Shown: positions 12,560 to 51,054 of the stretch, piece by piece
Numbering within the stretch: the first letter of the stretch is position 1
Layout: each line of letters opens with the position of its first letter
From: Lytechinus pictus
Lineage: Eukaryota
Direction of reading: 5' to 3'
Length of the DNA stretch: 64,000 bases
NCBI RefSeq assembly: GCF_037042905.1
Contig: NC_087252.1
Location: 4,960,001 to 5,024,000, forward strand
Notes under the pieces: model-generated
Database searches by the model: none
What the model saw: only the letters and a program-made list of their open reading frames with translations
Told to the model about the DNA's origin: nothing
Position numbers and translations under genes: made by a program

Positions 12560-30567
<18,008 letters not shown>

Positions 30568-34590: not shown

Positions 34591-35730
34591 AAAAATTCTT
34601 CTGAAAACAAAGTGATTAGTCAAACTACTTGACAATTTGAACTAATTTGAACTAACACCAACAAATTATATTAGACCCGTTTAAATGAAACTTACAATTT
34701 ATCACAATTACATACTATACACATCACTCGGGTGGTCTTAAACTTTTGCAAGTGGTGGTAATACTGTACCTTTCACACTTGATTAATTTTTTCTTTTTAA
34801 TCGCTTCATATCAAATTTACACGAGATTAGCATCAAAGTGGTAAGATAATGATTAATAGAAATAAGAAATTTCAGTTTAATATTGGTCACAGGTATGATG
34901 TACAAGATGTGGGTCAAATAATTACATTATATAATTTTTTTTATTTTTTTATGTCATGTATATAGAATTCATTCATAAAAACAAAATTCATATACAGAAA
35001 AATTGATCATGTGACCCATACAATACATATAATTGTTCCTTGATGAAATACAAGTGAATACAATGCCCCTAATCAATGTTAAATGAGCTGCATTCATCTT
35101 GCAATAGAAACATTAACAAAAATAACAAAGGTGTTCCAGGTAGTTCATGACTATAATCTCCACTTGAATTGTCAATCTGAATTTTTACTCGATTTTACAA
35201 AAAGAAATACATACATCCAGGAAACATTTTCAAAATGAAAGAATTGGTATCTGATAATCTGAATAGGTGCCTAAGGCCCGTATTCTGAACTCTAGTTAAT
35301 TGGTCGATCCAAAGCTCCTTAGCTGGTCCTTTTACAAAGTTCACATGATAGAGCAATACAATAGTCGGTAGATTCCTGTTCCTTTCTCAACTCTGATTCA
35401 TCACTATCTGTGTCACAATGGATAATCAAAACTTGTTGACTTGTTCTTTTATAAAGGATCTGGCCATAGCTCTTGATTCTAGCAAACAGGTCCTAAGAAG
35501 CATCCCTGTGGCACTCCATCTTTGGAAAGCACTTCCTAATTAAGTTGTTTCAAGCGCCCTCTAATAGCTCTCTGTAAAGTTTCAACAGAGATGTGTTTAA
35601 GAAATCCCAACTCTATTAAAATACAGGCATGTTTCTGGTGCACATGTCTTGTAAACACTTGATGAAGCTGAACGTATTGCCTCAACAGTCCTGAACTTGT
35701 ACATCATTACAAAGATGTGCAGGCTCTTTT

Positions 35731-36231
35731 TTAAGGAGAGGATGGCGGATGCAAAAATGGATGATGATCACACTTTATCTGATTGCTATTTTCTTTGATT
35801 TTGGCGGCAGCACGCTTCTTAACCTTACGTTTAGGGAGGAGTATAGCCGGCAGTTTTTGTGGGTATACACCTCCTTGGGCAATGGTCACCCCACGGAATG
35901 TTTCAGAAATCTCGTAATCATTGCCCACGGCCTGCCTCAGATGATACGGATTGATCCTCTTCTTCGGCTTTGGCGCCATGCCCCAATCCAGGAAACAATA
36001 CATACAGCTCATGTCGCGTTCGTTGTCGGCCAACGTGAGTAATTCTTCCACCAGATATTGCAGAACACCGGCGAGGAAGACCGGCGCCGCAGCGCTGATA
36101 CGGGAGGCGTAGCGTCCTTTTCGAAGATGACGATGAACGCGTCCAACTGGAAACGTCAATCCTGCTCGGGCCGAACGACTCTCGGCCTTTCGTCGAACTT
36201 TGCCGCCTTTATCTGGATCACGCCCAGACAT
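35731..36231 (-). CDS. Divergent histone H2A variant, copy B (166 aa)
   Basis: Open [45 protein letters not shown]-terminal half nearly identical to copy A. Could be a young pseudogene. Confidence 0.7.
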
Positions 36232-36279
36232 TTCACTTGAGATGAGCTTTTAAACCATAGATAGATAGACAATAGTCTC

Positions 36280-36723
36280 CTACTTTTGGCTGGTCTTTCC
36301 CGCTTTTTTTCCAGCAGCACTTCGCCTCCTCTTGCGTTTTGGGAGGAGTAGTGCGGGAATCTTCTGGGGATGATTAACCCCTCCCTGAGAAATGGTGACT
36401 CCCTGGAAGATCTTTGATATTTCGTCGTCGTCAAGGACAGCAAGCTGCAAGAGATGTGGTGTTATGCGCTTCCTTGGGTTATTACTTGATCGACCAATAC
36501 TGAGATATGTACTAAAACCGGATATTTGGAGGAGTTCTGTGACCAAGTACTCGAGCACGCCGGCGAGAAATACCGGCGCTGCAGCGCTGATACAGGAGGC
36601 GTAGCGTCCTTTACGAAGGTGACGATGAACACGTCCCACTGGAAACGTCAATCCTGCTCGGGCCGAACGACTCTCGGTCTTACGTCGAACTTTCCCGCCT
36701 TTTACCAGATCATGCTCAGACAT
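36280..36723 (-). CDS. Divergent histone H2A variant, copy A (147 aa), probably H2A.X-derived
   Basis: Open ATG-to-stop ORF with [46 protein letters not shown]. The tail SAAGKKAGKTSQK aligns to H2[22 protein letters not shown] on minus at 36823-36817. Expression unknown. Confidence 0.75.
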   Translation of the reverse strand: MSEHDLVKGGKVRRKTESRSARAGLTFPVGRVHRHLRKGRYASCISAAAPVFLAGVLEYLVTELLQISGFSTYLSIGRSSNNPRKRITPHLLQLAVLDDDEISKIFQGVTISQGGVNHPQKIPALLLPKRKRRRSAAGKKAGKTSQK

Positions 36724-38751
36724 TGCTCCTCAAGAATTAGCTCTCGAACTACCATTGTATCAAATCAAGGAGCTTCAAGCTCCTTGGTCAAATTGAGCCA
36801 TTGCGAATATTGTAAATTTTATATGCGTCCGCCAGCGGTATTAAAATAAAAACGTAAATTAATTATTATGCTGTGCAGATTATGCGAGCGAATCCATTAA
36901 CATGATTAAGGCACAGCCAGCACGGTGCACGTTATCAAATCTCCATTACTTTCAAATAAGGAAAGGTTTTATTTTGTGTGTGCATTATACCATACAAATA
37001 TTGACTGCATACTATCCGCAATGATTCTTCCATGGAGCTATATTACAGATGATTCTACATGTATGAATGCATCCATTGTAAAATAAAGTGCACTTTGATC
37101 ATAATACAGTAACAGGAAGCCTTGGATAGTTTATTGATCGCGGAGAGAGACTGATCGCTCGTAGTCATTTTGGCATTTTTTAGTATTGTATGCCACGAGG
37201 CTGGGACTAATAGCAGTCGTAAGAATGTCCTTTCGGGCCTCATGAAAACTCGGATACTAGTAATATTCAAATTTAATTTCAGACTGCGCATTATAATGTC
37301 GAGGTATATGGGTATAATCAAAATAGGCCTATACCTGTTCCCCGAATATTCAATTTTGATTTATGCAAGTGCAATTCAAAGAAAATATAGATATTCTCTC
37401 ACGACTCCAAACGTTTTCGACGATATTCAAAATCTTGAATGTGCGCACCAGAAATATTTTTTGTTGGATGATGACCAAAATGGAAAACGGGATTTGGGTG
37501 TTTGTGGGTCCTTCTTGACAATTAAGAAGTCAGAACTACATCATGTAAACACCGGCCCCCGGGGGAAACATACGGTAGCTCAGTGGTCCAAGTAATTTGG
37601 ATGTTGGTTACAGGTCTGGTAAATGGCTTTCAATATAGTTAACAAACCTGCATAGAAAGGTACTCCTACCAAAAGGAAAGTTAATTACCAAAAGGAAAAT
37701 AAATGATGGCCTGTATGATTTTTCAACAGACCTAGTTTAACAATTAACATTCTACCAACTCTTTTTTCATATTAGGAGCGGGTCGGTAGTTTAACAGACA
37801 TTCCCATTTAGGCCTATATGGGTGATTCCATACGTGTCGTACGGGACATTTAGAGAACATTAACAGTTTTTCGACAAGAAAAACAAAAAATATTCCAGTA
37901 ACTAAAGGTGATCATCAAGAACTGCCAAGGTGTTAGGAAAACCAAGACTTAACATGACTTGAATTCACATCCTGTATAATACAGATTTAAAATAGTAATG
38001 TGTCGTACGGGACGCAGAAAAAGTTGCTTTTTTGGAAACCTCAAGTGTGTCCTCTAAAGTCTGTGAGTTGGACAGATAATTTTCATAAAAACTGAACTCA
38101 AATTGATATTTAATTACTCAAGAACAAATACTTTTATGAATAAAAGCAGAATAAACATTCATGAATAAATAAAGCAAATTACAATTTTCGAGAACATTGT
38201 GGCGTATATACGGATCGACACTCAAAATGTGTCGTATATACGGACATCTCTAAATTGAAGCCAAACTTGTTCAATCACTTTATTTGGCTGATAATAATGA
38301 TAATCTTATCAAAGTAAAGACATTTATTACGTTAGAAACCGCTATTGGCTGAATAGTGCTGTAAATATATCATAAACAAAATATATGTGTTGTACAGGCA
38401 CTTGCGTGTTGTACTGGGCAGCCTTTATAAAACAATGAACCTTTTATCAATCAGATAGGGAGCATTACCCCTAAATTCTTCCTTTTTTAATGAAAAGCCT
38501 TAAGTTATCATTCGGGACAATATAATTAAGTAACCTCATTCTATCTGTTGTATATACAATTGGGAGCAATATATCATCATTTTTTTTCATGATGGAGAAA
38601 TGTACAATGGTTTTTTTTTAAGAGCTAAAAAACTTGAGGTTTTGTGTGAAGTAAAATGGTGAATTAAGTAATGATTTCCATTACACTATACAATGAATGA
38701 TACTGTGTTTGTGTAAATTATGGGGGGAAATGTTAGGATTTTTCATATACA

Positions 38752-41700
38752 CACTCACAGAAATATTGCCAATGTTAAGTAAAAAAATAGCATGTAAGAA
38801 TAAATTATACACAATCTATGTAAGATCTGGTAAAAAATGTCTACTTTGCCAGTTTGTAAGCATTTAAAATACATATGTGAATTGTAAAAAGGGTATTTAA
38901 CCTCGTTTGGGTAAATATTACATAGTAATGGAGTCCAAAATGCATGATGATTGGGAAAAGTTTTTCCACATCCGTGTTATGCGAAATGGCGATTGTGATT
39001 TATTATTTTTTTTTACACAATGGTGTTTTGTATATGAGCGAAATACACGGCGATTGTGAACTTAGATTTTTTACATATCGTGTTTTGTTTTATTGATATG
39101 CGAAATACACGGCGATTGTGTATTTAGTTTTTCTACATAATTGTGTTGTGTTTTATTGACACGTGCGCGCAGTGTAAAATTCAGAAGTTCTTAATTTTGA
39201 AGTACAAAATACCGTACTCTGGCAACATGGCGTACGTCGAAACGGTGCTGCGAGGATGGGGGCTTGGGGATTATGTGGACAAATTTGAAGGTAAGAATAG
39301 AAACTTCTTTTTTATTTCATGAACAAATGATTGATGCTAGTTATAGCTCTTGCAGAGGTAAATTATATGCATGTACGTGAATGTGGTGACTTAAAATTTA
39401 ATGACTTTAGCCACAGATCAGTGTAGTGTTCTGTCGTGTTCGGTCGTTGCGTCGCGTTGATGACCAACCGCGAACCTTCGCCCCGCTTGCTTTATTTGCA
39501 GCGCGGTTGTAAATTAGTGGTCGCTCTTAATTTGCATCACCCGAACACTAAAGTTTTATATGAGTCCAGGCATTGCAATAAAGATAAATCTGCAGATCTG
39601 AGGACAAGATTCATTTTCTTTAGATAATCAATGATGAACAGATAAATTTCACATATCAAAGAAAGTGAATAGGACGCGGACGTAGGCCTATACAGCGTCA
39701 CTCGCATTGCTCCCCGGGCTATTACTAAACACTCGGGTCGCGTCCCCGCGCCGCGGCCCGTCGCGTCTCGCTGAGCCAATTTTTTTGCAATGGTGTCTTC
39801 AAATCGGCAAACACCATGGGGAAAATAAATTTTTAAGTTATCGGCTGTTTTTAACCAGTTTCAGTGGTGTTCTCAAAGGGGGTGCGAGAGAAAATTTACT
39901 TTAAAATTTAATTTACTTAAAAGAAAAATATTAAATGAAAGGAAAATAAGTCAAGAATTGTAAATATTTTTTGTAAAGACTGACAAAATTATTAGAATGA
40001 AGTGAATAACACTCAATAGAATAAGTCTCTGAACTCTTCAAGCTAATGCTGTAAAAATGAGAAAGAAAGGGTGAGTGTGATGAAACCAGATTTTTTGCTT
40101 AAGGTCTTAAGGGGGGGGGGGGGAGTGTCAAATTGACACACCCACCCCCCCCCCCCCCCCAGTAATCTCAAGCACTGAAAATGCCCAGTTAGAATAGGGT
40201 TAAATAGAAGTGTCTTTGAAATAAATCTGGGGAAAGAGACTGATTTTTTGATATGTTAACAATTAATGAGATGTTTTTTAACGATTTTGTTACTGTTTTT
40301 TTTATTTCTTTATATTCAGAGCAAAATAACAATCTAGCCTTTGGCTTGTTACCAGTACTATTTCCAGGTAGAAGAAAGGGGAAAGGGGGCAGATATTCAA
40401 CCCGGGAAGCACAACTAGGATTCATAGATGTCCAAAATGTAAGTTGGGTCAGCTTGCTTTTTTTTAAATTGTAATGCTGTTTGGTCCTGTTAGTTAGCAT
40501 GTTATAAAGTGTGTATCTTATAGTGGAGATTCTAGATACAACAGAGGCTCAATTCTGTTGCAGCTTAGGAGAAATCTCTAATTTTGCGAGAGACATTTGT
40601 ATTGTATGTATGATTCTGATCTGGTTACCCACACTGTTTAATGCAAATTCCATGAAAATAAATTTTGATTTTCATAACCACTCTCACAAGAATTGATTTT
40701 GTGATTCTCGTAAATTGAACATTTCTTTATGTGCAATTACCCGGTAAAAACACTTAGACAGTGTGCAGCTTTCCCCCTCCCCCCCAAACTTAGACAGAAT
40801 CAGGAACATGAATCACGAACCCATAAAAATGGCTTGTGTTCAATCAAAAAAGTCCCAACTTCCTGATTTGTTCTAGACATGAATAATACATTTATAAATC
40901 GACATAGTTTATTCTTCACATCGAGCAAATGTCATTTCTTTCAGCGAAGAGGACTACGTGTAGTGCAAGTTCCTGATCAAGAATGGATAAAATATGCTTG
41001 AACTTGAACATGTTTTGTTTCGGGAAAATAGCCACCTCATGTCATGTGACCAGCCAATGGTCAGGGTCAGTAACTCTTGGTCAACGGTGTGTTCCATGAA
41101 TTTTTATTCGGATTTTTATTTTTTTTCATTTGAAGATCTGTACTTAAGGTAATCCTGGCTTGAATTATCTATCAAAATTATATTTCCTGCCAATCCAGTT
41201 CTGAACCTCTTTTGCATGAATATTTTTCTCTTTTTCTCTCATTCTTCTGTTCAGGAAAACCTTGCACTAGACAAGTTCCTGGAAGATATTGTACCTGAAA
41301 GTCGACCTCAACCGTTCATACTAGTCATTGGGTCTCTCCTTAAACCAGTGCAAATTTTCATCATTGTGGAAAGGCGGGCATTGGAACAAAGTAGCTTAAT
41401 GAAAGCCGTAGATACATGCTATAAAGCAGTGTATGTCCTGGATCTAGAATACCAGCCTCAGTGTTGTGGTGCGTGGGAGTTCCTACAAACATACATTTAT
41501 GAGATGAAAGGAGCTGTAAAATGCAGTGCGATCAGGGAGTTCAGAATCTTCGAGACAGCCTATGAGTCAATAATGAATACCAACATCTAACTGTCCTCAT
41601 GTGAGCTAGCAAGTTTATTGCCTTTCCAGATACTTTTGCTTAAGAGAAGTTCCTGTGTTGATAAATGTTTTGTTAAACTTTCTCTTTTTTTTGGAGGGGG

Positions 41701-44395
41701 GGGGGGGCGGTTAATTGACAAAGTGAATGTCAAACTGTAGACTGTTTAGTCGACTCGTTATCTGATATCTGAAGCCAGTTTGCAGCCCGCATTCAATAAC
41801 TATACTTTGTTTCGCTTCAACTTCAGTAGTGATGACACTGTTTTGTAGTGTACGCAATGCTTTACGCACCTGCAAAGTTTCACAGTGATCCTGGGCCGAG
41901 ATCTCGGGGGGGGGGGGGGCACTTGATGCCCCCCAAAAAAATAACGTAGTCTTTTTAGGGTTAAGTCAGAAAGTTGTTTGTTGTATGAAGTAAGGTCTTA
42001 ATTATTATATTTTGTTAAGTTGTTTTCTTCAACTGCTTTTGTTTTTTAATTGACAAAGTAAATGTCAAACTGTAGACTGTTCAAACCTGACTTAGTAAAT
42101 GTCAACTTGTAGACTGTTTAACCCTTTTCCTTTGGGGGCAGCGGGGGGTCAATTTGGCCCCCCTCCCTCAACAATCTGCGTGATAACTCCACAATGCGCA
42201 TGGGGAGGGGTGGCACTTGATGCCCCCCCCAAAAAAAAAAAGTTTTCACAGGGCCCAAAATAACCTAGTCTTTTTAGGGTTAAGTCAGAAAGTTTTTAGT
42301 TGTATGAAGTATGGTCTTAATTATAAGTAATTTTATATTTTGTTAAGTTGTTTTCTTCCAATGAACTTTTGCTCTAAAGAAGTTCCTATGTTGAGTGATG
42401 TCAACATTTTTTTTAAACTGCTTTTGTTTTTTAATTGACAAAGTAAATGTCAAACTGTAGACTGTTCAAACCTGACTTAGTAAATGTCAACTTGTAGACT
42501 GTTTAACCCTATTCCAATGGGGGCGGGTCAATTTGGCCCCCTCCCTCAACGATTCACGTGATAACTCCACAATGCGCAGTGATCTCTGCAAGCATAATTG
42601 AATTGAAGTATGATTATGCTAAAATTAAGTCATTTCAGCCATTTGAATTTTAAAAGTGAATTTTTATATTGATTTATTGAAACATAGAAATATTGCATTG
42701 CATTTGTACCCAAAATCATGTTTTTTAGTCATTTTTTGACTTGATGAAAAGTTTTCAAAGGATCGTGGCCTTAAATCTGTATGTGCAGTCACGATAAATT
42801 TGGTGTTGACACTGTTGAAAGTTGTGCGATACTTGTTAAAAAAAAATTCATGAAAGCTTGTGCCAAGACCACTATGCATTATGGAGATATTGTGTGAATC
42901 GTTGAGGGGGAGGGGGTAATCAAATAGACCCCCACCCCCCCCCCCCCCCAGTTGGTTAAGGCCTGATCTGGGTGGTGAACTTATAAAGGCAGTTAAATTG
43001 TATGTAAACTAGAGTAGAAATGCACCTGTATGTGATATAATTATTCTGTGTATATTTCAAAACACTTCTCTCATTTCCATCATCTATAATGATTGTTTGT
43101 TTGCCCTAATTATCGTTAATAATTAAATGACCTGATATTTTCAATAGGTGTTTTATACTTGACTCATTAGCTTGTCACCAAAAAGAGAATTCCAAAGTGT
43201 AGGGTGCCTGCATTTTTCCAATAGTTCGGATGTAGAAGCAATAACATGCCATATAGCCAGGGGAGGCGCCAGGGTGTTTTGGTAGGAGGGGCGAACTTTC
43301 CAGGGGGGGGGGGTGACATCATAATATTTTTTGAAAATTGAACAACAGGGGTAAAATCAGGGTAAAATGGCTTATACATGATTAAAAACGCTATTTTTAC
43401 AATTATCTACCCTTCACCCTTTCTTTTTCTTCCTCTTTTTCTTCTTTTCTCTTAATTTTTTTTCTTTTTTTTTCCTACTCAAAATATTGCAACCGCATCT
43501 TTCAGCAATTTACATGGGAGGCCTACTAGTTTTTCAAAACATGACTTAAAGTACATATATAATTTTTTTCCACCATTTTATATTCCTTGTTGTTGTTTTT
43601 ATAGAATCATCCTAATTATTTGTAAATATTGTAATTAATAGTTATTTTTTCTAATCCCTTATAATTATTTGTATAAATAATTCATGTAATTTTGTTTCTA
43701 AATAAACATATAAATATAAAAAAAGTTGTTACATGTATATAATGATCGATGTGTTCTTGTCTGTGTCATTATAATATTACAATATATGTTCTTTTTTTAC
43801 ATGATTTTCTGTATAATTGTTTTATTTTGTAAAATATACCAAACTATTATTTAAGAATTTACATTTCAGCAAGGTAAAAACTTTACATAACTGCTGTGTA
43901 TTTTTTTAAATGAATCATTTTGGTGTAAATTTTACTTCTGTATTCTGTACCCTTTACTCTGCTAGTACATGGAGAACCTATTGGGTGAACACAATAACAG
44001 AGTAAAGGGTACAGAATACTGAAGAAAAATTACAACAAAATCGGATGCATTAAAAAAAATTAGTCAGCAAGTATGTAAAATTTTTACCTAGCTTAAATCT
44101 AATTCTTACATAATAGTTTGGTATATTTTACAAAATAGGGGTTAGGTAAAACTTTACACAATTGTTGTGGAGTTCTATACGTACATCGCAGATGTGTATT
44201 TTTTACAAAATGAAAAAATTACACAGCAATTATGTAAAAAATTTACTTTGCAGAAATGTACATTCTTACATAATAGTTTTGTATATTTTACAAAATAGGG
44301 GTTAGGTAAAATTTCACACAATTGTTGTGGAGTTCTATACGTACATCACAGTTGTGTAAAATTTAACACAACTTGTGTAAAATTTTCTGTGTGTG
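38752..44395 (+). mobile_element. EnSpm/CACTA (CMC)-like element, 5.6 kb, no transposase seen
   Basis: Termini CACTCACAGAAA / TTTCTGTGTGTG, 2-bp CA on both sides. Subterminal inverted repeat 43826-44135 and tandem repeats 44105-44350. Confidence 0.65.
39227..41590 (+). CDS. Transposon-borne spliced ORF (172 aa): SAM-like N-terminal fragment plus SAMD3-like C-terminal region
   Basis: Exons 39227-39290, 40320-40438, 41255-41590 with GT-AG sites and matching phases. Translation MAYVETVLRGWGLGDYVDKFE..QPFILVIG..AVDTCYKAVYVLDLEYQPQCCGAWEFLQTYIY. Confidence 0.6.
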
Positions 44396-46380
44396 CATGA
44401 TATATGTCACAACCGTCACTTGTAATTCCACAAAATATTTTTTTTCTAAAGAAATGCGATTTTACTTTTTTAAACTTTTCTGCATTTCATGAAACCAAAA
44501 CTGTATATAAAAAATTAGTGATCATTAAGGGAGGTCCAAATAGATGATTGATATTATGTAAATCTTTTGTTTTTAATCTTATAATAATTTCGTAATAGCT
44601 TGCAAGAGGAAATCATCTTCCATGCTAGGGTGAATTAGTTATAAGGTTTTCTTTTCATGCTGAATGACAAAGAAATCAACCAGCTCTGACCAGTGAAAAT
44701 CACCAGTTTAGCTGAAGGGATTCACAAAAGAATAGGCCTACATGAAGTCAATTAAAATGGTTAGAATCACCTATTTCATGTTCTATGGAGATAAAAAATA
44801 CCTATTCAGTTCACTTAATGTCAAATCAATTACTTAAATAAAACTAGGCCTATTGTCTATAGTTTCTGAATCCAAATCCTGCAATGAAATGCAGTATATA
44901 TTATGTGTCGTACGGGACAACTTTTAATAGGACAATTATTGAAAATTGAAGGGCAGTAATAATTATTAGATCCTTATAGGATAAGTCGATTCCCCATGGG
45001 TCAAAGATAGAGAAACTGATATTGTAAGATTGCATCATCAAAAGTAAAAGTGTAGGAAAAACTTTTGCATTTTCTTGTGTCGTACGGGACATTGCCTAAA
45101 AAAGGTTCGGAAAAATCAGGGATCCCCCAAATATGGATCATGAAAATTTTGTAGATATTGTTTTGAACCATCAATAATAAATTATTCCATTGACCTATAA
45201 CATTTTCAATTCTTGTGCTTTGCCAATAATGGTTTCAGGCAGTGTTTGTACTTGACTATTTAATCAGCAAAATTATTGAAAATTGAATATTCCATTGTTT
45301 CCCGCTAAAAAAAATATATCTAACTTCACTTTTGGTTAAAACTCATAATTTTCATAAAATTGAAGTATCATAGTAAAATATTACACTACTTATGACTTAT
45401 TGAAAGCATGTTGAAATTTATGAAAAAAAGACGGGAAAGCCAGTACAAGGAATATAAACAAAGGAGAAATAGTACAGCCTGTTTACCTTTAAAAAGAAAG
45501 TTCTAGCTATATAGGTCATTTAACTTTATGTATGCCTCAAGGCGCTTTGGCAACTCTTTATTTAAAATTGTTGTGAAAGAAATGGGGATAAAGAGTATTT
45601 ATCGTGAAAAATATCAATGAAATGTCCCTTCTCAATGCTTTCTACATAATACGTTCAGCATATCAATAGATCTGTATACCAACTTCTAAAAGAAACATAA
45701 ATTTCAGTCATGAATAATTAAAACTTGAAATCAATTTTAATGGGGCAGCTACTCGTATCCGTCAGGAATGAAAAACTCGAAATTCTAATCACTATTTGTT
45801 TATTATTATTTATTTATTTATTTATTCATTTTTTTTTTTTTGGGGGGGGGGGGTATTTTCACATTTTTTTCGTCAGAGCGTATATCTACATAAAAATCAT
45901 TTCCAACCCGCTCCTAAAAGAATCAAAATTTTAGTCATAGACCATTAAAAAATTATAATTCATTCTGTTTGTATTACATAACATAATGGGGCAGCTGAGT
46001 CAGCTCGTATATTATAGGACGTCAGAAATCAAAGAAATCAAAATTGTAATAACTTCCTTAATCTTTGATGGATTATCCTCAATTTTTTATCTGGTATTTT
46101 TACAACTTATTTTTCGTCAGAGGGAAATTTTCCTATAATAAGAACTACTAAAACTTTGGATGCAAAATTTCCGAAATAGTAATTTTGGCCAACATATATT
46201 TTATATTTGTAAAATGGGTACCGGTAATCATTTCATTCTTCAATGAACAATGTCAGCCGTGCTTGCGAGGTGGCGCTATTCCAGAATGGAATGGTTTATG
46301 CAGAGAGTGGCCCACTCGCTGGATTATCCCTGGATAGATCTTTATTTTGCTCAATCATTATATTCCACTGGCGGATCCAA

Positions 46381-49774: not shown

Positions 49775-50580
49775 TATATAGGCCTATATATATAGTCCTA
49801 CTCCTAGACCTAGGTCTATATCTTCGGGGAATACTTTTTACAGCGAAATTTGATAAGCTTTATCATTGCAATGAATCATTTCTAACTGTTAGCTCTTTTT
49901 AAAATTAGTTTCCAGTTCTCATCACTCACAGGCACGTGCAATTGTTTTTACTGCTCGGAATGCTCTTAATAGGGGCGCCTGATTTTTTCCCCAAAATCAA
50001 GGAGAAAAGCCGACCCTCAAAAAGGTAGAATCCGGGGCCAACACTCTCCGTGGATGCTCAGAGGTTGATCCATAAATGGGGGCAGTGGCGTAATAACTAT
50101 GGCAACAAATTTGAGGGGCCAGACATAGTAATATCTTGGGGCAGAATTTTTGAAAAGCTGCGCTCACGCGGATAAATCAAAATAAAATTTGGGGGAGTGG
50201 AACATCACTGCCATCAGACTGGAGCCCTCTCCCACCAGTCCAAGTTGAAATCATGAAGCCAAAATGACCCAAAGGCAAAGTCAGATTCAGAAAAAGGGTG
50301 TCCGATAATCTGACTTTAAGTTTAAGTTTGGGTTTATTTTAGCTTTTTCTAGGACCCACATAATCATGATAATCGTCATCAATTAATAGGGCCTAGGCCT
50401 AATATAAATAATATCGAAACTCAAGACTAAAGCCCATCCCCGAGGCCTGACCCCACCAAGAGAGGAATCCATTAGGGCCTAATTATTTTGACAAAGCAAA
50501 AAACACACCCAACCCTGTCTCCGGTACCGTACTATTAGTATTTCCCCATTAAAAATAAATAAAGAGACTCGTCAATTCGT

Positions 50581-50615
50581 TCTTTCTTGGAAATGTGATG
50601 GCCCTGAAAAGGGCC
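50581..50615 (-). terminator. Histone 3' stem-loop plus histone downstream element (U7 site)
   Basis: Minus strand GGCCCTTTTCAGGGCC (50615-50600) followed 10 nt later by CAAGAAAGA (50589-50581), the sea-urchin-type HDE. Confidence 0.95.
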
Positions 50616-50643
50616 GATTTGATGGTGCTTGGGCACAGGAAAT

Positions 50644-51054
50644 TTAATATTCCTGGCTCTGGCTGCTCTTTCCACCCTTCTTGGCAGCAGCAGACTTCTT
50701 GGGGAGAAGCACAGCCTGGATGTTGGGCAGAACACCTCCCTGTGCGATGGTGACTCCGCTAAGCAGCTTGTTCAACTCCTCGTCGTTACGGACGGCCAGC
50801 TGCAAGTGACGGGGGATGATACGGGACTTCTTGTTGTCGCGTGCGGCGTTGCCAGCCAACTCGAGGATCTCAGCTGCGAGATATTCGAGAACAGCAGCCA
50901 TGTAAACAGGGGCTCCGGCTCCAACACGGGAAGCATAGTTTCCCTTGCGAAGGAAGCGATGGACACGGCCAACTGGGAACTGAAGTCCTGCTCGGGCTGA
51001 GCGGCTCTTTGCCTTGTTGCGTGCTTTTCCGCCTTTTCCTCCACGTCCAGACAT
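50644..51054 (-). CDS. H2AX: Histone H2A.X, 136 aa, intronless
   Basis: Canonical H2A core ([43 protein letters not shown]) with an extended tail ending SQSQEY, the SQ(E/D)-hydrophobic motif that defines H2A.X. Confidence 0.95.

Follow-up and report, generated by a model that had tools for sequence, protein, structure and literature searches.

The H2A.X-A-B locus

The window analysed here is a stretch of 64,000 nucleotides of the Lytechinus pictus genome (assembly GCF_037042905.1, contig NC_087252.1, positions 4,960,001 to 5,024,000 of the forward strand), and all coordinates are positions within it. On its minus strand lie an H2A.X gene and two further open reading frames for H2A-like proteins, here called A and B, with the following features.

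50644-51054, minus strand: H2A.X gene, 136 aa, C-terminal end SQSQEY; likely parent type
50575-50620, minus strand: histone 3' stem-loop of H2A.X, GGCCCTTTTCAGGGCC, then CAAGAAAGA (Rfam RF00032, 33.1 bits, E = 3.9e-8)
36724-37012, minus strand: 5'UTR and conserved promoter of the A-B unit, with the TATA box CATATAAAA at 36818-36824 and an inferred start near 36790
36280-36723, minus strand: ORF of variant A, 147 aa, intronless; 7-aa alpha2/L2 insert, KRKRRR C-tail, ending in TSQK and a stop codon
36232-36279, minus strand: spacer from the A stop to the B ATG, 48 bp, the last ~30 nt homologous to the A 5'UTR
35731-36231, minus strand: ORF of variant B, 166 aa, intronless; 13-aa alpha2/L2 insert, KRKVKKR tail, 11-aa C-terminal extension
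35052-35730, minus strand: apparent 3'UTR, transcribed, downstream of B, without a histone stem-loop and evolving at the background rate

Both A and B start with ATG, are uninterrupted and stand head to tail. The first-pass annotation of this DNA had reported two intact frames on the same strand as H2A.X, and their coordinates and ATG-initiated reading frames were verified; its estimate of 14 kb of mostly transposon DNA between them and H2A.X is about right, since the gap is 13.9 kb in L. pictus and includes a nested repeat of 7.6 kb (37820-45424). This block is missing from Lytechinus variegatus, where the gap between H2A.X and A is 5.4 kb. Within the nested repeat is an element of 5.65 kb (38745-44400), of which the genome has at least five other full-length copies, 98-99% identical. 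These copies are on other chromosomes, and the element has no long ORFs. The repeat family into which it was inserted is older, its many copies having 78-90% identity; the element itself has the appearance of a mobile element with recent activity. Further along the window, at 22968-24748, Tc1/mariner-type transposase ORFs occur in two inverted copies (372 and 247 aa) forming an inverted repeat of about 1 kb.

A search of the whole genome (812 Mb) gave strong matches to A only for A itself, B and then H2A.X, while the remaining H2A genes have 53-57% identity to A, below H2A.X. In both Lytechinus species the cluster adjoins a gene for a Chk1-like protein kinase (17694-18047; L031:18063-20441), so that two genes of the DNA-damage response, H2A.X and Chk1, are linked within about 30 kb.

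Protein sequences of A and B

Judged by sequence, A and B are members of the core histone H2A family, both by fold and by the C-terminal/docking segment. The scores against the Pfam Histone model PF00125 are 30.2 bits for A and 30.4 for B (curated cut-off 26.4), and against the H2A C-terminus model PF16211 they are 22.1 and 27.2 bits (cut-off 20). The signature AGLxFPVGR is found in the alignment, and the best matches among PDB sequences are canonical H2A and H2AX (E ~1e-33). The DNA-contacting arginines, the L2 arginine (KRITP in A, KRINP in B) and the docking domain (GVTIxQGGV...LLPK) are retained, except for R44C in L. pictus A, at a conserved DNA-contacting position where L. variegatus A and both B proteins keep arginine. 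The acidic patch of H2A is kept at five of its six residues in A (E64 replaced by Q) and at three or four in B (Q56, T64 and Y91 in L. pictus).

The differences from H2A.X are concentrated in a few places. Where helix alpha2 ends and loop L2 begins, behind ELAGNA, A carries 7 and B 13 additional residues; after QGGV there are two more in A and one in B; and the C-tail holds an extra basic insert of 4-5 residues, giving KRKRRR in A and KRKVKKR in B. The SQ(E/D)Y end is absent from both, A ending in TSQK (TS in L. variegatus) and B in NQIKCDHH... followed by PSSP at the end. The first-pass annotation had drawn attention to all of these, and the protein alignments verify both sets of insertions, the basic tails and the missing terminal motif. 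The net charge of the N-tail, counted from the alignment, is about +2 in A and +3 in B, compared with +6 in H2A.X, and the SGRGK start is gone from A. The C-tail is shifted in the opposite direction, with +10 in A (KRKRRRSAAGKKAGKTSQK) and +7 in B, neither tail having SPKK, compared with +4 in H2A.X.

The possibility that the alpha2/L2 inserts are mini-introns was rejected: RNA-like contigs are colinear with the genome and have no joints there, the inserts measure 21 and 39 nt with no GT...AG frame, and the flanking residues differ too. At 36333-36342, within the basic-tail codons of A, the contig from run X3 (see below) leaves the reference for 9 letters, and the basic tail of A also differs by one codon between L. 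pictus and L. variegatus; the KRKRRR run may hold a length polymorphism.

Orthologs and distribution

The L. variegatus ortholog of A is XP_041470059.1 (146 aa, 95% identical) and that of B is XP_041470060.1 (166 aa, 88% identical). The gene order H2A.X, A, B, Chk1-like kinase is the same in that species, with a spacer of 50 bp; the H2A.X protein is identical between the two species, and the stop codon of A is shifted. Two more B-type proteins of L. pictus, XP_054761089.1 and XP_054761092.1 (P0384 and P0385), are both intact and differ from B of the window at 2 and 4 residues (S2Y, C79F, F80Y, Y123C, K152E); they are either alleles or haplotigs, or additional copies of another assembly, and the present assembly has one A-B pair.

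Word-indexed searches of 5.8 billion proteins, the more telling of the searches made, found no A/B-like protein outside Lytechinus. A profile search of 1.84 billion representatives likewise gave no A/B-like relatives, its top matches being fused or canonical H2As; the underlying 50%-identity clustering hides A and B themselves, and this search therefore says little on other taxa. Searching the ESM Atlas returned generic H2A clusters only. A match in Branchiostoma (P0004) was rejected as a relative, being an internally repeated H2A.X model. As far as protein databases show, A and B are so far known from the genus Lytechinus only, in line with the earlier suggestion that they are lineage-specific. 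That these searches gave no orthologs from other echinoids sits uneasily with the old age of the duplication. RefSeq already has automatic models of both, under the names 'H2A-like' and 'H2A-beta, sperm-like'; the latter name is no evidence of sperm expression. The literature search found no description of these genes, nor of an echinoid H2A with such inserts in the literature searched, and the identity with an already described variant that had been considered at first pass was accordingly not found.

Selection on the coding sequences

Substitution rates between L. pictus and L. variegatus were estimated by the Nei-Gojobori method, with Fisher tests for omega below 1, and gave the following values.

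H2A.X: dS 0.117, dN 0, omega 0
A: dS 0.108, dN 0.022, omega 0.20 (7 non-synonymous and 11 synonymous changes, p = 0.0011)
B: dS 0.170, dN 0.063, omega 0.37 (23 non-synonymous and 18 synonymous changes, p = 0.0026)

For A and B pooled, omega is below 1 with p = 2e-5. Insertions and deletions give a similar picture, as the 945 bp of coding sequence contain a single in-frame 3-bp indel while 13.3 would be expected from the flanks (27 indel events in 1912 bp; P = 2.3e-5), and the 501 bp of B alone contain none, with 7.1 expected (P = 8e-4). The flanking and UTR DNA of the two species is 86-90% identical. Substitutions at codon positions 1/2/3 number 4/4/10 in A and 11/10/20 in B, so that 30 of the 59 pooled changes (15/14/30) are at third positions (chi-square ~8.2, p ~0.02). 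The replacements between species cluster in the tails and inserts, and the fold and docking segments are nearly invariant. These results bear out the selection that the first-pass annotation had suspected, with omega significantly below 1 in both genes, together with the indel deficit and the third-position excess; its description of the proteins as fast-evolving also holds, given dN values of 0.022 and 0.063 where H2A.X has 0 over the same interval.

In L. pictus as in L. variegatus, A and B have open frames, and that of B is intact in three L. pictus sequences (alleles or copies). In simulations of neutral evolution at the A-B divergence (142/435 sites) a frame stays open in about 0.5% of cases, and chance is therefore no explanation for two open H2A frames. 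Taken with omega and the indel deficit, this excludes simple pseudogenes. We conclude that A and B are real, selectively maintained, lineage-restricted and as yet uncharacterised H2A variants.

Origin and age

H2A.X is the closest paralog of A and B in the genome, with 61% identity. The C-tail core SAAGKKAGKTSQ of A and the matching segment of B align with a 12-residue segment of the H2A.X tail, and such a C-tail is absent from the other sampled H2As of the L. pictus genome. Among the sampled paralogs, YASR is common to A, B and H2A.X only. In both species the TAG stop of A falls on the CAG (glutamine) codon of SQEY in the alignment, where B has AAG, and the stop is followed by GAG where H2A.X has GAA. 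On sequence grounds the C-tail, YASR, the alignment of the stop with SQEY and the adjacency in both species point to an H2A.X-type ancestor.

In a maximum-likelihood protein tree, which contained no H2A.Z sequence, the A proteins of the two species pair with each other (100/97), as do the B proteins (99/95), in a joint clade supported at 100/99. All other H2As, which evolve slowly, collapse to a polytomy that gives this clade no place relative to H2A.X. The earlier proposal that the pair derives from the neighbouring H2A.X therefore stands as far as the tail, YASR, the stop codon and the conserved adjacency are concerned, with no placement from the tree; the phylogeny recovers A and B as a clade, but not the grouping with H2A.X that had been expected.

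The pairing of A with A and B with B places their duplication before the species split. A and B separated long before L. pictus and L. variegatus did, and dS between them is saturated over much of the gene: it is about 1.4 overall, 0.28 in codons 1-35 (36619-36723 compared with 36127-36231), about 1.0 in codons 36-70 and saturated beyond. Such a profile suggests that the first ~35 codons are a gene-conversion tract between A and B, older than the species split. Overall, a tandem duplication of an H2A.X-type gene would have produced the ancestor of A and B, a second duplication, long before the two species parted, would have given the A-B pair, and later gene conversion would have homogenised the first ~35 codons.

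Promoter, transcription and possible translation of B

Over the 300 bp upstream of A, identity to L. variegatus is 91-97%, compared with 68-92% in other non-coding windows, and the TATA box is retained there. The 3' region (35052-35730) is 87.4% identical between the species, with 6 indels. Runs X1-X4, the only RNA-like runs in which the pair was met, were taken to be RNA, a guess backed by transcript-shaped coverage and by a transcriptome-like contig total of ~90 Mb; RNA-like contigs of X1 and X3, both from one 2023 study, cover 35052-36772 with zero coverage on both flanks, at a k-mer depth over A-B of 27-35 in X1 and of ~6-7, patchy, in X3. One such contig (36146-36667) bridges the 48-bp spacer, and no spliced joints were seen. 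Two ribo-depleted RNA runs of another study (~1.3 Gb sampled from each) had zero A/B reads, which indicates that expression is conditional. For a second organism, transcriptome-sized runs hold 0.08-0.09 of the sampled words and genome-sized runs 0.12-0.15, which fits transcription of the L. variegatus orthologs. Upstream of A, each of the four runs strongly represents a short high-copy sequence at 37819-37900, at a contig depth of 800-950, and X19 and X20 have reads of it; its loose ends, on either side, identify it as belonging to an expressed repeat.

No Histone3 stem-loop was found at E<=5 in 34800-37000 around A and B, in a scan for which H2A.X served as positive control at 33.1 bits. A scan of the whole window at the gathering threshold of 34 missed the H2A.X stem-loop (33.1), which the local scan found; the match to the H2A.X stem-loop pattern is unique in the window. 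The contig end at 35052 has no canonical AATAAA closely upstream of it; the nearest lies ~100 nt further on.

The spacer contains a TATA-like element (TTTAAAAG; TATAAAAG in L. variegatus) that is only 15-22 nt from the ATG of B and is thus too close to serve B, and the homology of B to the A 5'UTR extends over only ~30 nt upstream. B therefore appears, from its sequence context, to be without a promoter of its own, and would be translated either from an RNA with two ORFs or from a transcript starting within A. In animals the second cistron of an RNA is, as a rule, translated poorly; the coding constraint on B nevertheless argues that it is translated. The single conserved TATA promoter upstream of A would drive an RNA spanning both ORFs and ~680 nt 3' of them, probably polyadenylated since it has no histone stem-loop, with expression confined to some samples.

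Predicted structure

The AlphaFold2 monomers of A and B have mean pLDDT values of 64.6 and 60.1, with helices alpha1, alpha2, alpha3 and alphaC kept and the inserts below 50 (residues 75-84 in A, 71-91 in B), which suggests that the predicted inserts form a flexible enlarged loop. Residues 12-132 of A, modelled by ESMFold2 together with a late H2B of the genome, gave a canonical dimer with an ipSAE of 0.79 (best control 0.01), a mark that 51 of 78 solved complexes and 2 of 108 mismatched pairs attained, although the prediction may reflect memory of solved H2A-H2B structures. Contact agreement between runs was at least 91%, partner pLDDT was at least 66, and residues 73-83 of the A insert are outside the predicted H2B interface. 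As a model, the predicted dimer lends support to a possible pairing of A with H2B.

Discussion

From our data, we consider that A and B are functional, replication-independent H2A variant genes, so far known only from Lytechinus, with a probability of roughly two in three. Since the histone fold and the full docking domain are both kept, as are the arginines in contact with DNA, pairing with H2B and entry into nucleosomes are to be expected. In nucleosomes, the DNA site bound by L2 of H2A together with L1 of H2B is some five and a half turns away from the dyad, and the C-tail of H2A is near the DNA entry/exit. An enlarged alpha2/L2 loop beside this DNA-binding site would alter nucleosome behaviour, and so would a hyper-basic C-tail near the entry/exit and the linker; the less basic N-tail and the lost SQEY phosphorylation site would contribute, as would the eroded acidic patch in B. 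Together these changes may alter DNA and linker binding and the recruitment of partners, giving a specialised chromatin that does not signal DNA damage.

It could be argued that both genes are non-functional, decaying H2A.X pseudogenes, open by luck and transcribed incidentally. Their strong divergence, the loss of SQEY and of the histone 3' stem-loop, R44C in L. pictus A, the drifting A stop, the two deep RNA runs without A/B reads and the transposon-rich neighbourhood would all suit such a history. However, pooled omega below 1 (p = 2e-5), the indel deficit (P = 2.3e-5), the third-position excess (p ~0.02), a neutral ORF survival of ~0.005, the conserved promoter and the same gene order in two species are difficult to reconcile with it, and we regard it as strongly disfavoured and very improbable. 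Decay might instead be restricted to B, as a former duplicate in the 3'UTR of A that is little translated, if at all, and is slowly degenerating while only A works. This would be in line with a B that has no promoter of its own and a spacer TATA-like element too near its ATG, with the unbroken RNA-like coverage across the spacer, with the higher omega of B (0.37, and ~0.9 in the first 35 codons), with its eroded acidic patch (Q56, T64, Y91) and with several amino-acid polymorphisms within L. pictus. On the other hand, omega of B is still significantly below 1 (p = 0.0026), its 501 bp are free of indels against an expectation of 7.1 (P = 8e-4), L. variegatus and three L. pictus sequences all keep its frame open, the frame has survived despite a saturated dS from A, and the fold and docking segments of B barely vary between the species, which makes a purely residual B unlikely.

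A different question is where the proteins act. An alpha2/L2 junction with 7-13 added residues, hydrophobic or aromatic for the most part, is unusual for a nucleosomal core histone, and the insert adjoins a DNA-binding loop and is predicted with low confidence. The proteins might then be made but act outside nucleosomes, as soluble binders of H2B or chaperones or with the hydrophobic insert as an interaction module. We think this quite improbable, since the DNA-contacting arginines, the L2 arginine and the whole docking domain, which matter mainly in the octamer and nucleosome, are kept under selection, and since the predicted A-H2B interface is canonical and the insert faces away from it. Returning to A and B as functional variant genes, it is tempting to speculate further that they form a true bicistronic histone gene of an animal, with one promoter and one RNA from which two nucleosomal H2A variants are translated, and whose enlarged alpha2/L2 loops would be a new nucleosome surface on the DNA face, specialised for the gamete or early-embryo chromatin of Lytechinus. 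This is a doubtful extension at present, rather unlikely in its full form.

A and B fit no named class of H2A. The earlier statement that they match none of H2A.Z, macroH2A and canonical H2A agrees with the search rankings and with the macro and stem-loop tests. They are not H2A.Z, as judged by search rankings only, where the best matches are canonical H2A and H2AX, nor macroH2A, as 147- and 166-aa proteins with no Pfam macro match; and having no RF00032 stem-loop match they are not replication-dependent histone genes. With H2A.X they have in common the C-tail core SAA.KK.GK.SQ, YASR, the adjacency in both Lytechinus species and the intronless structure. They differ from H2A.X in the alpha2/L2 and tail insertions, in an interspecies dN of 0.02-0.06 compared with 0, and in being without the SQ(E/D)(Y/F) end, where A has its stop on the Q codon, and without the 3' stem-loop. 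They would derive from the H2A.X family but are not members of it, as the motif SQ(E/D)(Y/F/I/L) is absent from their sequences.

The mammalian short H2As (H2A.B, H2A.L, H2A.P, H2A.Q) are lineage-restricted, fast-evolving and born by duplication, with the docking domain and C-terminus truncated. Their acidic patch is weakened, as in B. In contrast, the docking domain of A and B is full and the tail longer and more basic, there is no common origin, and on these sequence features A and B do not belong to the short variants. In plant H2A.W, extra basic residues in the C-terminal tail bind linker DNA and favour compaction. Extra basic C-tail residues are found in A and B too; however, SPKK/KSPKK is missing from them, H2A.W has no L2 insertion and the origin is independent, and by their tails A and B are not H2A.W. 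Within echinoids, the cleavage-stage set and the sperm H1/H2B are a precedent for developmentally specialised histone genes, some of them replication-independent: for cleavage-stage histones, PMC3380720 cites Marzluff 2006, and sperm H2B is described in PMC9903204.

Two features of A and B are unusual: the histone fold region carries an insertion, and a single promoter stands ahead of two ORFs. To our knowledge, insertions inside the fold are very rarely tolerated in core histones, and we know of few lineage-specific H2A variants outside mammals and plants that were shown to be under selection. The pair would be a dated example of H2A.X giving rise to variants in which the DNA-damage motif has been lost, and it may also be a case in which one transcript carries two histone ORFs. 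It is found in a sea urchin genus of developmental genetics, and as L. pictus can be bred and edited, the role of A and B is directly testable.

Elsewhere in the genome, one early-type H2A copy (L036, G000:C286:10945-11904) has an altered C-terminus that extends it to 137 aa (...TAKSASLLLQNQTKQRPF), compared with 124 aa in the other sampled early-type copies (L032, L035), and is probably a damaged array member.
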